A model generated the notes under the pieces. The model saw only the letters and a list, made by a program, of their open reading frames with translations, had not been told where the DNA came from and ran no database searches. The translations under genes were made by a program, and so were the position numbers. From the sequence record LR588166.1: a stretch of DNA of 64,000 nucleotides; one strand, written 5' to 3'. Positions 22,332-46,820 of this stretch are shown here, in pieces (positions within the stretch are counted from its first letter, which is position 1; every line of letters begins with the position of its first letter).

Positions 22332-22360
22332 TAGACAAGCAACTGTAAACACTGTATAAT
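22332..22360 (+). promoter_or_regulatory. Sigma70-like promoter
   Basis: TAGACA-17 bp-TATAAT. Confidence 0.7.
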
Positions 22361-22387: not shown

Positions 22388-22684
22388 ATGAACATTCATT
22401 TATCTTTTAAGGAACAACTTTCTAAGCTAATTGATGAAAATATAAATACATATCCTGATGCTATAGATTGGATAGTATCTCAAATGTCTTTAATAGATAT
22501 CGAATCTAAAAAGACAAAAGCAGAATCTATTATGGAAGCTCTTATAGGTGATACTGAATTTTTTAATAACCCTTTAGAACAGGGTGGAAGTAATAAAGAT
22601 TTTATAGTGTGGTATGTAACTAAATATAATTGTACTACTAAATACGCTATCGAACGGTTACTTCATTATTGTAAACAGAATTAG
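22388..22684 (+). CDS. Hypothetical protein
   Basis: AAGGG RBS; promoter upstream. Confidence 0.6.
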   Translation: MNIHLSFKEQLSKLIDENINTYPDAIDWIVSQMSLIDIESKKTKAESIMEALIGDTEFFNNPLEQGGSNKDFIVWYVTKYNCTTKYAIERLLHYCKQN

Positions 22685-22799
22685 CCCTTAGGACCGCCAA
22701 ATGTTTTGGCTTAAGGCGTACCGGTGCTGTATCGGAGCTTAGTGATTCGCTACCACAAAAGCATAAGCAGCTAGGAGACTTAAAACGTCTCCTATTTTT
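22682..22799 (+). ncRNA. Candidate structured RNA element (pseudoknot) ending in an intrinsic terminator
   Basis: Stems CCTTAG/TTAAGG, GCCAAA/TTTGGC, CCGG/TCGG; loop GCTGT complementary to GCAGC at 22767; terminator TAGGAGAC/GTCTCCTA-T5. Confidence 0.5.
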
Positions 22800-22811
22800 A
22801 TATATACAGGA

Positions 22812-23012
22812 GTGAAGTATATGAATAGCGATTATGCCTCTATGTTTATAGTAATATTTGCTATATTAGTTGTGTTTATTTGTAAACCGACAACATTTAA
22901 TGAGCCTAAAAACACTATCGATACAAACAAAAGCAATGTAGCGAACGACAGTATTCCACTTACAGGAAACATTTCTAGAACACCGGGTATAGGTACAGGT
23001 ATAGGATTATGA
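22812..23012 (+). CDS. Small membrane-anchored protein (66 aa)
   Basis: CAGGAG RBS; one TM helix; C-terminal PGIGTGIGL. Confidence 0.6.
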   Translation: MKYMNSDYASMFIVIFAILVVFICKPTTFNEPKNTIDTNKSNVANDSIPLTGNISRTPGIGTGIGL

Positions 23013-23161
23013 AAAAGAAAAACCCAATCGAGCGCAATCCAGTTGCACATCATGTAAACACATTTAACAAACCTAAAGTAGAAAAAGATAAGACAAAATA
23101 CTCTAGGAAACAAAAACACAGGACTAGGAATAGTCCTGATTTTTTATGTATAATATATTGA
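23009..23161 (+). CDS. Small basic protein resembling alternative ribosome-rescue factor ArfA (50 aa, not in the ORF track)
   Basis: MKKKNPIERNPVAHHVNTFNKPKVEKDKTKYSRKQKHRTRNSPDFLCIIY*; ATGA overlap with the upstream gene; V.K.K..Y.RK.KH motif. Confidence 0.55.
   Translation: MKKKNPIERNPVAHHVNTFNKPKVEKDKTKYSRKQKHRTRNSPDFLCIIY
23119..23145 (+). terminator. Intrinsic terminator inside the ArfA-like ORF
   Basis: CAGGACTA-GGAA-TAGTCCTG-A-T6, ending 14-16 nt before the stop codon. Confidence 0.8.
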
Positions 23162-23187
23162 CAGATATTGTATTTGGAATATACAAT
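23158..23187 (+). promoter_or_regulatory. Sigma70-like promoter
   Basis: TTGACA-18 bp-TACAAT. Confidence 0.6.
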
Positions 23188-28620: not shown

Positions 28621-30237
28621 ATGTCTATTGTATGTAAAATTTGTAATAAATCATTTCCTAGTATGATTACAAGTACACATCTAAAAACACATAACATCAC
28701 TACTGCAGAATACAAAGATCTTTATGGAAAATATTCTCTTGTATCAGATGAATATAGATCAAAGCGGTCAGAACAGTCATCTGGCATTAATAATCCTAAT
28801 TATGGAAATAAATGGTCAGACAGCATGAAAGAATCTATGTCTAATAAAAAATCCGGAATTATTCCATGGAATAAAGGCATAGAGTTACATGATACTACTA
28901 TGTACGTGAAATCTGCAGAACAGAGAGAACTAAAGTACAAAGAAGGAATACTAACTAGGAAATCATATGTTAGAACTGTAGAAATAAATAAAAAAATTTC
29001 TGATAGTGTGAAGAAGTATGCTGCAGAAAATAAAGAAGAAATAAAACAGAGAAGTGCCAAAGCAAAAGATACATATAGTACAAAGAAAACGTTAGGGTTA
29101 GTGCAAATACGAAAAGGATATAAGTTAACCAAATCACACAAAGAAATAGCTATACAAACATTAAACAATTATAGGGCTTCTAAAATAGCTGAATCTAATA
29201 AACAAATAGAAAGTAATATATCTCTTGCAAATCTAACATTATTAAATGACATAAATGAAAACAGCTTAGTGTTAAGGTGTAATATATGTAATAATGAATG
29301 TTCTTTTACAAAACAATATTTTAGAGCTAGTAAATTTAAAATAGAATTATGTCCTGTATGTTATCCTAGAAATAGTAATAGATCTGAAAAAGAAAAAGAA
29401 TTAGAATATTTTATAACAAGTTTAGGTATTTCGTGTATAAATTCTGCACGTATAAACAATAAAGAAATAGATATATTTTGTAAAGAATTAAATATTGGAT
29501 TTGAATTTAACGGATTATACTGGCATAGTGAGGATGTTTTAGAGTATTCTGGGTATAGTAAAACAAAAGATTACGAAAAGAAAATATTTTTTAGAGATAA
29601 AGGAATTAGATTAATTCAAATATTTGAAGATGAGTGGGACTTAAAGCAGGATATAGTAAAGAGTAGAATAAGAGCTATATTAGGAAAAACAGAACACAAA
29701 ATATATGCAAGGAAATGTACTGTTAAAGAAATAAATTCTAAAGTTGCAAATGATTTTGTAGAAAAAACACATTTACAAGGTAAAGGTAGAGCAAATGTAA
29801 GATTAGGGTTGTATTATAACAATGAACTAGTTTCTGTAATGACATTTTTAAATAAAGATATTACTAATAAAACATCGAGTTGTCAAATAAATCGTTTTAG
29901 TGTAAAACATAATACATCTATCCCGGGCGCCGCCGGAAAATTATTTGCTTACTATATAAATAACTATAATCCATCTAGTGTTATTTCGTATGCAGATTCT
30001 CGCTGGTCTGACGGTAATTTATATGAACAGCTAGGATTTAAATTAGATAAACAGACACTCCCTAATTACTGGTATATAAAAGATAATGATCTTAAAAGAT
30101 ATCATAGATACAATTTTAGAAAAGATAAGTTGCCCGAAACTTTACTAACAGAAAAAGAATATATGGATAGTTTAGGATGGAATAGAATATGGGATTCGGG
30201 ATCTACTAAATGGGTTTGGACAAATAAAGGGGCATAA
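28621..30237 (+). CDS. Free-standing homing-endonuclease-like protein: C2H2 zinc finger, NUMOD3-like motif, Vsr/DUF559-like nuclease and GNAT/Mom-like C-terminal domain
   Basis: CKIC...THLKTH; NPNYG.KW; EIDIFCKEL.IGFEFNGLYWHS; RLIQIFEDEW; VISYADSRWSDGNLY.QLGF. Confidence 0.75.
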   Translation: MSIVCKICNKSFPSMITSTHLKTHNITTAEYKDLYGKYSLVSDEYRSKRSEQSSGINNPNYGNKWSDSMKESMSNKKSGIIPWNKGIELHDTTMYVKSAEQRELKYKEGILTRKSYVRTVEINKKISDSVKKYAAENKEEIKQRSAKAKDTYSTKKTLGLVQIRKGYKLTKSHKEIAIQTLNNYRASKIAESNKQIESNISLANLTLLNDINENSLVLRCNICNNECSFTKQYFRASKFKIELCPVCYPRNSNRSEKEKELEYFITSLGISCINSARINNKEIDIFCKELNIGFEFNGLYWHSEDVLEYSGYSKTKDYEKKIFFRDKGIRLIQIFEDEWDLKQDIVKSRIRAILGKTEHKIYARKCTVKEINSKVANDFVEKTHLQGKGRANVRLGLYYNNELVSVMTFLNKDITNKTSSCQINRFSVKHNTSIPGAAGKLFAYYINNYNPSSVISYADSRWSDGNLYEQLGFKLDKQTLPNYWYIKDNDLKRYHRYNFRKDKLPETLLTEKEYMDSLGWNRIWDSGSTKWVWTNKGA

Positions 30238-44992: not shown

Positions 44993-46820
44993 ATTATGCG
45001 AAACAGATCGTATTAATATTATCAAATTACACTTCGATGATTTAAAATCTGTATCTGAATTAAAGCAAATATACGGAGTCTCTTATGATGTCATTAAAAC
45101 CATCATAAGAGATGAAACGAATCGTCTACCGTTACAAGAAACTGATATAAAAATTTTGAAATTTAAAAAACTTGTTTCACAGGAGTTGTTATTTGAATTA
45201 CATGTAATTAAAAAACAATCATTTAATGAAATAAGAAAAACTTATAAGATTAATGAACTTCATTTAAAACAAGTGTTTAATGATTACGGAATACCAATTG
45301 AAAAGTGTTTATATACTGCTACTAACAAGAAGCGTAAAACAAAAAAGCCTGAAGATTTTACTAAAGACTTTTTCGAACACTTAGTATATAACGAAAGACG
45401 AACAATTAGTTGGATAAAAAATAATTATAACTTTAATTATGAAGAACTAAAAAATCATTTAACACATTTAAAAATCGATTATACTAATTCGTTGCCACCT
45501 GCTGTAAAACATCAACAAGATAAAATATCTAGAGAAACCCTAGCAGAAGAATTAAAAATTAAATCTATTGTTGATATAATAAATGAATACGGAATTTCGA
45601 GAACTTATGTAGAAAGCGTTATAAAAGAATACAATATACAGTATTTTACAAAACCGAAACATTCTATATTAAGTGGTAAAGAATCAGAAATTTATCGGAT
45701 GTATTATGATGAATGTATGACTACATACCAAATAGCAGAAAAATTGGGAGTATGTCAATACACCATATGGAAAATAATGGCAGATAACGGATGGAAAACA
45801 CGAGAACCGATTAAAAAAATTGATTTGATTTGGAATGATATAAAAGAAGAAGTTGTTAAATTAATAGACAACGGTTATACATTAGCTGCTTTATGTGAAA
45901 AATACGAAATAACATCTATTACTGAAAAGTTAATAGAAGAAGGTATAAAATATACAAAGGGAAATATTTCTTCTGGTCATGCAGAAATATCTGAATATGT
46001 GCGTTCATTGGGATTTAATGTAATCGACAATGATCGTACTATTATATTTCCGCGAGAAATTGATATTTTTATTCCCGAACTTAACATAGGAATAGAATAC
46101 AACGGATTATATTTTCATAGCACACGAACAGAAGGAAATGTAACAAAGCATAGAGAAAAATATAGCATATGTAAACAAAAAGGTATTCGTTTAATACAAA
46201 TTTTTGAAGATGAATTTATTCATAAGAAAGAACTAGTAAAGAGAAAATTAGCACACATTTTAGGAAAATCTAATAATAAATGCTATGCAAGAAATTGTAT
46301 AGTTAAAGAAATAACGGTAGCAGATAAACGAAATTTCTTTAAAAAATATCACATACAAGAAGATTCTGCATCCTCATATGCATATGGACTATATTATGAT
46401 AACGAATTAGTTTGTGCTATGTCTTTTCTTAAAAAGAAGAAATGTACAGAATTAGTTAGATATGCATCTTCTATGCACGTGATAGGCGGATTTTCTAAGT
46501 TGTTGAAATATTGTATTAATAATAACAAAATAGATGTTATAAACACATATGCTGATCTCAGATGGTCGAATCCGACAAATAATGTATATGTAAACAATGG
46601 GTTTGATATACTGTATGAGACTGATTTTAATTACACTTATGTGAGTAAAGAGGATTTTTCAAAAAGGCTTAATAGGCAAAAATTTATGAAACACAAGTTG
46701 AAAAACATTTTATCAGATTTCGATAAATCATTAACAGAAGAAGAGAATATGAAAAATAATGGATTTTATCGAGTATACGATGCTGGCCATTTAAAATTGC
46801 AATATAAGGTTAATAAATGA
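44985..46820 (+). CDS. Homing-endonuclease-like protein: tandem HTH repeats, Vsr/DUF559-like nuclease and GNAT/Mom-like domain
   Basis: EIDIFIPELNIGIEYNGLYFHS; RLIQIFEDE; ELVRYAS...GGFSKL; TYADLRWS; paralogous to 28621-30237. Confidence 0.75.
   Translation: MNKLCETDRINIIKLHFDDLKSVSELKQIYGVSYDVIKTIIRDETNRLPLQETDIKILKFKKLVSQELLFELHVIKKQSFNEIRKTYKINELHLKQVFNDYGIPIEKCLYTATNKKRKTKKPEDFTKDFFEHLVYNERRTISWIKNNYNFNYEELKNHLTHLKIDYTNSLPPAVKHQQDKISRETLAEELKIKSIVDIINEYGISRTYVESVIKEYNIQYFTKPKHSILSGKESEIYRMYYDECMTTYQIAEKLGVCQYTIWKIMADNGWKTREPIKKIDLIWNDIKEEVVKLIDNGYTLAALCEKYEITSITEKLIEEGIKYTKGNISSGHAEISEYVRSLGFNVIDNDRTIIFPREIDIFIPELNIGIEYNGLYFHSTRTEGNVTKHREKYSICKQKGIRLIQIFEDEFIHKKELVKRKLAHILGKSNNKCYARNCIVKEITVADKRNFFKKYHIQEDSASSYAYGLYYDNELVCAMSFLKKKKCTELVRYASSMHVIGGFSKLLKYCINNNKIDVINTYADLRWSNPTNNVYVNNGFDILYETDFNYTYVSKEDFSKRLNRQKFMKHKLKNILSDFDKSLTEEENMKNNGFYRVYDAGHLKLQYKVNK

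Follow-up and report, generated by a model that had tools for sequence, protein, structure and literature searches.

Genomic setting of the element

The window analysed here, a stretch of 64,000 nucleotides, belongs to the Pseudomonas jumbo phage vB_PaeM_MIJ3 (LR588166.1), with which it shares 100% identity at identical coordinates. MIJ3 is a PA5oct-like phage of the genus Wroclawvirus, and its AT-rich genome comprises 288 kb with 33% GC. The region is found at 97.8–98.8% identity in PA5oct, Deifobo, Paride, Cassandra, Ettore, Callisto, phi30-2, phi30-3, and PAC2, all of which are members of Wroclawvirus. The phage is transcribed by the host RNA polymerase (PMC7318152).

The element of interest lies in a series of genes that are all encoded on the plus strand (Table 1). 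An oligopeptidase A gene is followed by a sigma-70-like promoter and a 98-aa ORF, and the stop codon of this ORF marks where the element starts. The 3'-UTR position that the first-pass annotation had considered is therefore the one observed. The promoter is invariant in 10 genomes, and it is the likely start of the element-carrying transcript. Downstream, a ribosome-binding site (RBS) leads into a small membrane ORF that overlaps a short DUF7230 (ArfA-like) ORF.

The 98-aa ORF is an ORFan. It belongs to no Pfam family, and no homologue beyond the genus was detected among 5.8 billion proteins or in phage records. Its relatives are confined to its own 90% cluster, plus one metagenome contig that switches to unrelated sequence. 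That contig (ENA, L034, 7193 nt) follows the phage near-identically across rIIB and the oligopeptidase and for 197 nt into the ORFan, after which the unrelated sequence creates a false 96-aa "relative". The switch probably marks the end of a chimeric contig.

No feature of the locus evolves faster than the small membrane ORF, in which 14 of 192 sites are variable across the 10 near-identical genomes and the Gly-rich C-terminal repeat carries a 6-nt indel. The 3' end of the DUF7230 ORF harbors a second terminator, T2. One extra T in the U-run of T2 gives phi30-3 a different, longer annotated DUF7230 tail, and the residues past the T2 hairpin appear dispensable when the sequences are compared. 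The DUF7230 copy of phage PaP1 ends in an ordinary stop codon and contains no internal terminator. Farther along the window, three collinear direct-repeat blocks with 71–73% identity connect positions 29463–29734 and 46055–46314, some 16.6 kb apart. They point to a gene present in two diverged copies, and the blocks probably belong to paralogous homing-endonuclease-like genes.

Table 1. Features at and around the element, in window coordinates
Feature	Position	Strand	Description
Oligopeptidase A gene	upstream of the 22332 promoter	+	
Sigma-70-like promoter	22332–22360	+	11/12 hexamer matches, 17-nt spacer; fronts the upstream ORF
98-aa ORFan	22388–22684	+	equivalent to gp189 of PA5oct; its 3'-UTR is the element
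Element (3' trailer and T1)	22685–22799	+	begins at the ORFan stop codon
Hairpin 1	22685–22718	+	plausible bulged two-part stem-loop, directly 3' of the stop codon; from pair probabilities and centroid
Hairpin 2	22721–22735 (22721–22724/22732–22735)	+	weak stem-loop of 4–6 bp, in competition with other folds
A-rich linker	22736–22771	+	mostly unpaired in the unpaired-probability profile; contains 22767–22771
Intrinsic terminator T1	22772–22799 (stem-loop 22772–22794 and U-run)	+	8-bp stem, 4 G-C pairs, 7-nt loop, 5 U
RBS and small membrane ORF	22808–23012 (RBS 22808–22812; ORF 22821–23012)	+	63 aa; no promoter of its own detected
DUF7230 (ArfA-like) ORF	23009–23161	+	50 codons; Pfam PF23876, E 3e-16; overlaps the stop codon of the membrane ORF
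Terminator T2	23119–23138 and U-run (to 23146)	+	from the terminator scan; inside the 3' end of the DUF7230 ORF
Second sigma-70-like promoter	23158–23187	+	in front of a 372-aa gene
GATAAATA copies	25826, 30281, 33248, 33867, 40459, 42253, 55629, 61542, 61987, 63570	+	candidate late promoter

Terminator T1 and the spacer in front of it

The terminator proposed earlier at the 3' end of the element was recovered by a consensus scan that returned 4 sites of this type, compared with 0.7 expected from shuffled sequence. When the whole element is folded, the pairs of T1 reach probabilities of 0.83–1.00. A G+C stem-loop is followed by a U-run and lies 3' of a same-strand gene, which is the arrangement that defines an intrinsic terminator. 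By sequence and fold, T1 is a genuine intrinsic terminator, and this assignment is solid. Its stem is invariant in the 10 genomes, and only an AT-repeat past the U-run differs in length.

T1 is also weaker than most terminators of the MIJ3 genome. The comparison set comprised the 46 intergenic terminator-like sites located at most 250 nt from an ORF end. Within this set, the energy of T1 (−10.7 kcal/mol, against a genome median of −12.4) ranks 34th, and only 3 of the 46, T1 included, carry a 7-nt loop, while 35 have loops of 3–4 nt. Over 13 nt, the 5' arm of T1 together with its loop (22773–22785) exactly matches the anticodon arm found in the two tRNA-Leu(UAA) genes of the phage (MIJ3 174955–174972 and 175464–175481; BLAST E 0.67), a likeness that is probably due to chance.

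The distance from the ORFan stop codon to T1 is exceptional. It amounts to 87 nt, compared with a median of 13 nt and a usual range of 6–24 nt in the same set. The spacer is also GC-rich, as had been noted before, with a GC content of about 0.50–0.51 against 0.29 in the flanks; in local GC contrast it stands at the 99.4th percentile genome-wide. About a dozen non-coding segments reach the GC content of the spacer, several of which are tRNA clusters. Among spacers of at least 40 nt, the value of 0.51 is the highest, and the next one (0.44) contains tRNA-Ser genes. A long GC-rich spacer of this kind hints at some function beyond that of a plain 3'-UTR. Elsewhere in MIJ3, the top GC-rich stretches outside tRNA genes and ORFs of at least 60 aa are found at 232354–232443, 216162–216251, and 228914–229003 (GC 0.63–0.68), and these may represent structured RNAs or small GC-rich genes.

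The element is carried by 11 phage records that correspond to 10 distinct genomes, about 98–100% identical to each other, and conservation figures therefore describe 10 near-identical genomes of one genus. Across these genomes, positions 22685–22799 contain two substitutions in total. The resulting 2 variable sites in 115 compare with a rate of 5.9% for third positions of codons (binomial p 0.03). Intergenic stretches elsewhere are comparably quiet, and once T1 is left out, the difference between element and codons is no longer convincing. The sequence comparison points at most to mild constraint on the element.

Folding of the trailer

The first-pass annotation had read the spacer as a series of hairpins drawn together by a closing helix and a pseudoknot, possibly forming an aptamer with an expression platform. 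All the sequence strings quoted in support occur at the positions given for them, and the hairpin series stands in part. Hairpin 1 is built from an outer helix (22686–22691/22711–22716), a 4-nt bulge (22692–22695), and an inner helix (22696–22701/22705–22710). Pair probabilities range from 0.57 to 0.95 in the outer helix and from 0.39 to 0.72 in the inner one, and hairpin 1 is, besides T1, the sole structure retained in the centroid. Its energy of −10.3 kcal/mol is equalled in 2% of 36-nt genome windows and in 9% of shuffles matched for composition (p = 0.09). Hairpin 1 is accordingly a plausible real structure that remains statistically borderline.

The remaining helices fared worse. Hairpin 2 has a pair probability of 0.42 and competes with a rival pairing. 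Folded alone, it extends to 6 bp (−4.8 kcal/mol), with only 3 of the 7 supposed loop bases left free. The closing helix (22682–22685/22749–22752) has a probability of 0.001, and a 4-bp helix of such size arises in 39% of shuffles. As for the pseudoknot between the loop at 22726–22730 and the linker at 22767–22771, a complement of at least 5 bp is present in 55% of shuffled loop/linker pairs, and the loop is largely consumed by the extended hairpin 2. Relative to shuffles, the whole element folds with a z-score of −1.18 and the spacer alone (22685–22771) with +0.35. A hairpin and a terminator are really present, and the multi-helix pseudoknotted architecture is indistinguishable from chance.

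The two substitutions do not alter this picture. Position 22719 (T/C) is a C in 9 of the 10 genomes, which would convert a possible extra closing pair with 22684 from G-U to G-C. The T-to-C change at 22730 in phi30-3 would likewise turn a possible G-U into a G-C pair, and it fits the extended hairpin 2 and the proposed pseudoknot equally well. Such structure-compatible substitutions are no evidence for pairing, since by a rough estimate some 70% of random transitions would do as little harm.

A terminating riboswitch depends on a second pairing able to compete with its terminator. Blocking the 3' arm of T1 costs the best fold 9.5 kcal/mol, and the 5' arm then finds almost no partner; the same applies to a nascent transcript ending at 22786. 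The loop-linker helix ends at 22771, and the T1 stem starts at 22772, so that the two adjoin with no overlap. In the modelled fold, the loop-linker helix could at best stack on T1 and would not block its formation. Because no alternative pairing competes with T1, no expression platform is visible in the element.

Folding of the opposite strand raises the reading of a functional RNA antisense to the trailer, which we consider the least probable of those weighed here. The minus strand of the element folds better than the plus strand and beats its shuffles (−37.9 kcal/mol, z −2.54), and a weak terminator-like site lies on it at 22695–22683. However, neither a minus-strand promoter-like site nor a proper terminator is found nearby, the neighbouring genes run in the plus direction, and it is on the plus strand that the strong hairpin has its U-run.

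Searches for known families, relatives, and hidden genes

The lack of a match to known riboswitch and ribozyme classes, already noted in the first-pass annotation, agrees with database searches. No match was obtained with Rfam 15 at the gathering score over the 64-kb window. At E ≤ 10, the segment 22500–23000 returned no riboswitch or ribozyme family and one irrelevant sub-threshold sRNA match. An aptamer thus lacks both an Rfam match at this threshold and any fold that beats shuffles beyond the one hairpin that accompanies T1, and the earlier suggestion of a ribozyme finds no counterpart either. ARAGORN detected no tRNA or tmRNA in the window and 12 tRNAs elsewhere in the MIJ3 genome. A tRNA- or tmRNA-like element was rejected on this result, together with the probability of 0.001 for the 4-bp pairing that precedes a CCA at 22753–22755.

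The element is single-copy, with no paralogue across the 288-kb genome. In blastn searches of 50,697 phage records and 72,556 plasmids, matches came only from the genus (the 11 records mentioned above). IMG/VR contains no exact copy of a 20-mer taken from hairpin 1, and neither IMG/VR nor the phage records, the metagenome loci, or the protein collection yielded a diverged homologue of the element. Lood et al. (2020) annotated four ncRNAs in their RNA-seq study of PA5oct, none of them at this position (PMC7318152).

Genes of the DUF7230 family occur in 133 Pseudomonas phage records (Pakpunavirus, for example, PaP1), in 289 Vibrio phage records, and on high-GC IMG/VR contigs. In PaP1, a Vibrio phage, and the IMG/VR contigs, the gene is preceded by a small, translationally coupled ORF, and neither an RNA nor a terminator of comparable kind is present upstream. 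As far as these sequences indicate, the element is no conserved companion of the ArfA-like gene. On the other side of the cassette, homologues of the 372-aa gene (30–50% identity) in IMG/VR and JGI metagenomes follow a DNA ligase and an 80-aa gene, and the whole gp189–191 module is missing there.

Coding explanations were considered and set aside. A 46-codon stop-free frame, shifted by −1 relative to the ORFan, has no start codon, no slippery heptamer on inspection by eye, and no relatives. The 59-codon open frame on the minus strand has no relatives either, and read-through of the ORFan stop codon would add only 9 residues. Two RNA-based candidates were set aside after inspection by eye as well. 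For a CRISPR-repeat mimic (RNA anti-CRISPR), the element was compared with the P. aeruginosa I-F, I-E, and I-C repeats, which it resembles in part, and the repeat stem has no counterpart in it. For an RsmA/CsrA sponge, GGA motifs lie in stems or in the bulge and none in hairpin loops.

Promoters and RNA evidence for the downstream genes

The promoter scan detected sigma-70-like sites at 22332–22360 and 23158–23187 and a weaker one inside the ORFan (22601–22630, 10/12 matches), and none between 22685 and 22820. A second motif, GATAAATA, was considered along with these. Throughout the MIJ3 genome, the 80 nt preceding ORFs contain it 13 times as often as expected (24 occurrences against 1.9). Its copies are found before the sheath gene and after several terminators, and they often precede structural genes. 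By analogy, GATAAATA is a candidate T4-like late promoter, and it falls outside the sigma-70-like motifs reported for PA5oct (PMC7318152). No copy lies near the element (22685–22820).

The description of the next genes as having an RBS and no promoter of their own is therefore borne out for both types of site, and an independent promoter of either type at 22795–22811, which would have spoken against attenuation, was not found. Because no promoter motif separates T1 from these genes, the membrane ORF and the DUF7230 ORF are probably fed by read-through of T1.

RNA evidence comes from four RNA-seq runs of one infection study (X1–X4) in the form of assembled contigs, whose depth is a poor measure that cannot rank parts of genes and may include DNA carry-over. 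One RNA contig spans 22179–22912 and crosses T1. In run X1, short contigs covering 22411–22686 reach about 1,300–1,700-fold depth, some 8–10-fold above the long flanking contigs (one ending at 22440, another starting at 22720), which lie at about 170–180. The change from long low-depth to short high-depth contigs near 22411–22440 gives a weak hint of a transcript start. The depth profile of X1 is compatible with a discrete, abundant transcript running from the 22332 promoter to approximately T1, with about ten-fold less RNA beyond it. The depth step across T1 is shallower or not clean in runs X2–X4, and in X4 short contigs at 22614–22704 are deeper than their neighbours, which is a weak signal.

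Proposed function and competing explanations

We favour, with a probability of roughly 55%, the interpretation that the element is a structured 3'-UTR ending in a constitutive leaky terminator, which throttles the downstream cassette. The mRNA of the genus-specific 98-aa gene would carry an untranslated 3' trailer in which a bulged hairpin at the stop codon is followed by an A-rich linker with little structure and by the canonical T1. Most transcripts initiated at the 22332–22360 promoter would end at T1, and read-through would be the likely source of mRNA for the membrane ORF and the DUF7230/ArfA-like ORF. T1 would thereby act as a constitutive leaky attenuator that holds the cassette below the level of the upstream gene, with no ligand sensing. 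We infer that T1 terminates transcription in vivo and that it does so incompletely, and hairpin 1 may serve as a structure that protects or processes the 3' end. The attenuator idea of the first-pass annotation is retained to this extent: a real terminator precedes promoter-less genes and is able to attenuate, while the aptamer and the expression platform drop out.

The main rival is a trans-acting sRNA of about 90–160 nt, derived from the 3'-UTR and ending at T1, that would act on phage or host mRNAs, possibly via Hfq. We regard it as unlikely, although several features agree with it. The layout is of the Hfq type, with stem-loops, an A-rich single-stranded stretch at 22753–22771, and a terminator with a U-tail. 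Such an RNA could be processed from the mRNA or start at the weak promoter-like site within the ORFan; the GC content equals that of the phage tRNA regions, the element has changed more slowly than third positions of codons, and the deeper X4 contigs lend a weak further hint. However, none of the four ncRNAs annotated in PA5oct maps here (PMC7318152). Contigs cannot show a discrete short RNA, no seed or target was identified, and paralogues in the genome and relatives elsewhere are both lacking.

It is likewise doubtful that the spacer has no present function and is a relic at the junction of a horizontally acquired cassette, such as a decayed gene end or a recombination scar, with T1 the only part that matters. 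The nearest distant relatives retain the 372-aa gene and miss the gp189–191 module, the neighbouring cassette is also GC-richer than background, and the fold of the spacer is no better than random, all of which would suit a relic. On the other hand, the two open frames across the spacer have no protein similarity, the DNA resembles nothing else in phage or plasmid records, and the sequence is somewhat conserved.

A regulated attenuator, in which an aptamer or a site bound by protein or RNA within 22685–22771 tunes T1 and thereby controls the membrane-ORF/ArfA-like cassette, is very improbable. It would account for a long GC-rich spacer placed right before a terminator that gates promoter-less genes. 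Both substitutions are compatible with the proposed pairs, and the T1 depth step seems to differ among RNA runs, the latter being a very weak point in its favour. Against it stand the lack of an Rfam family at E ≤ 10, a spacer fold that does not exceed shuffles, and the missing antiterminator; the pseudoknot would not overlap the T1 stem, and it is, like the closing helix, at chance level. The substitutions lose their weight in view of the estimate for random transitions, and the DUF7230 genes of PaP1, a Vibrio phage, and the IMG/VR contigs have no such element upstream. A more specific proposal is a long shot: the trailer would be a genus-specific cis-regulatory RNA through which read-through of T1 responds to a factor of phage or host origin, or to translational or ribosome-rescue status, and thereby determines how much of the ArfA-like rescue factor is made during infection. 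If true, this trailer would define a new attenuator class linked to the control of ribosome rescue.

Should the leaky-terminator interpretation be correct, the locus illustrates ordinary phage operon punctuation, and the ArfA-like cassette is probably supplied by terminator read-through. Its value would then lie in the annotation of PA5oct-like therapy candidates, where it defines one unit made up of promoter, ORFan, 3'-UTR, and T1. The long GC-rich spacer is nonetheless a genuine oddity, and 3'-UTR sRNAs and regulated attenuators of jumbo phages are poorly charted.

Comparison with known systems

Terminating riboswitches share with this locus a region located directly 5' of a terminator that precedes regulated genes. 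The element differs from them in having no Rfam aptamer, no exclusive antiterminator, and no statistically supported fold, and in its position in a 3'-UTR after an ORF instead of just after a promoter. Hfq-dependent 3'-UTR-derived sRNAs of Gram-negative bacteria form a class that includes CpxQ and SdhX. By analogy, the element would resemble this class in a terminator held in common with the parent mRNA, an A-rich single-stranded stretch, and a U-tail.

The four ncRNAs of PA5oct (ncRNA001–004) belong to the same phage lineage and are similarly GC-rich, non-coding, and devoid of database relatives. They differ in their coordinates and in their definition by RNA-seq signal in ORF-free regions (PMC7318152), and the element has no sequence similarity to ncRNA003.

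The leaky inter-cistronic intrinsic terminators of phage and bacterial operons provide a further parallel. T1 departs from them in its distance from the stop codon, well above what is usual in this genome, and in the GC-rich spacer that fills it. It resembles them in combining a G+C stem and a U-run after one ORF and before promoter-less genes, and its moderate energy and large loop fit partial read-through.
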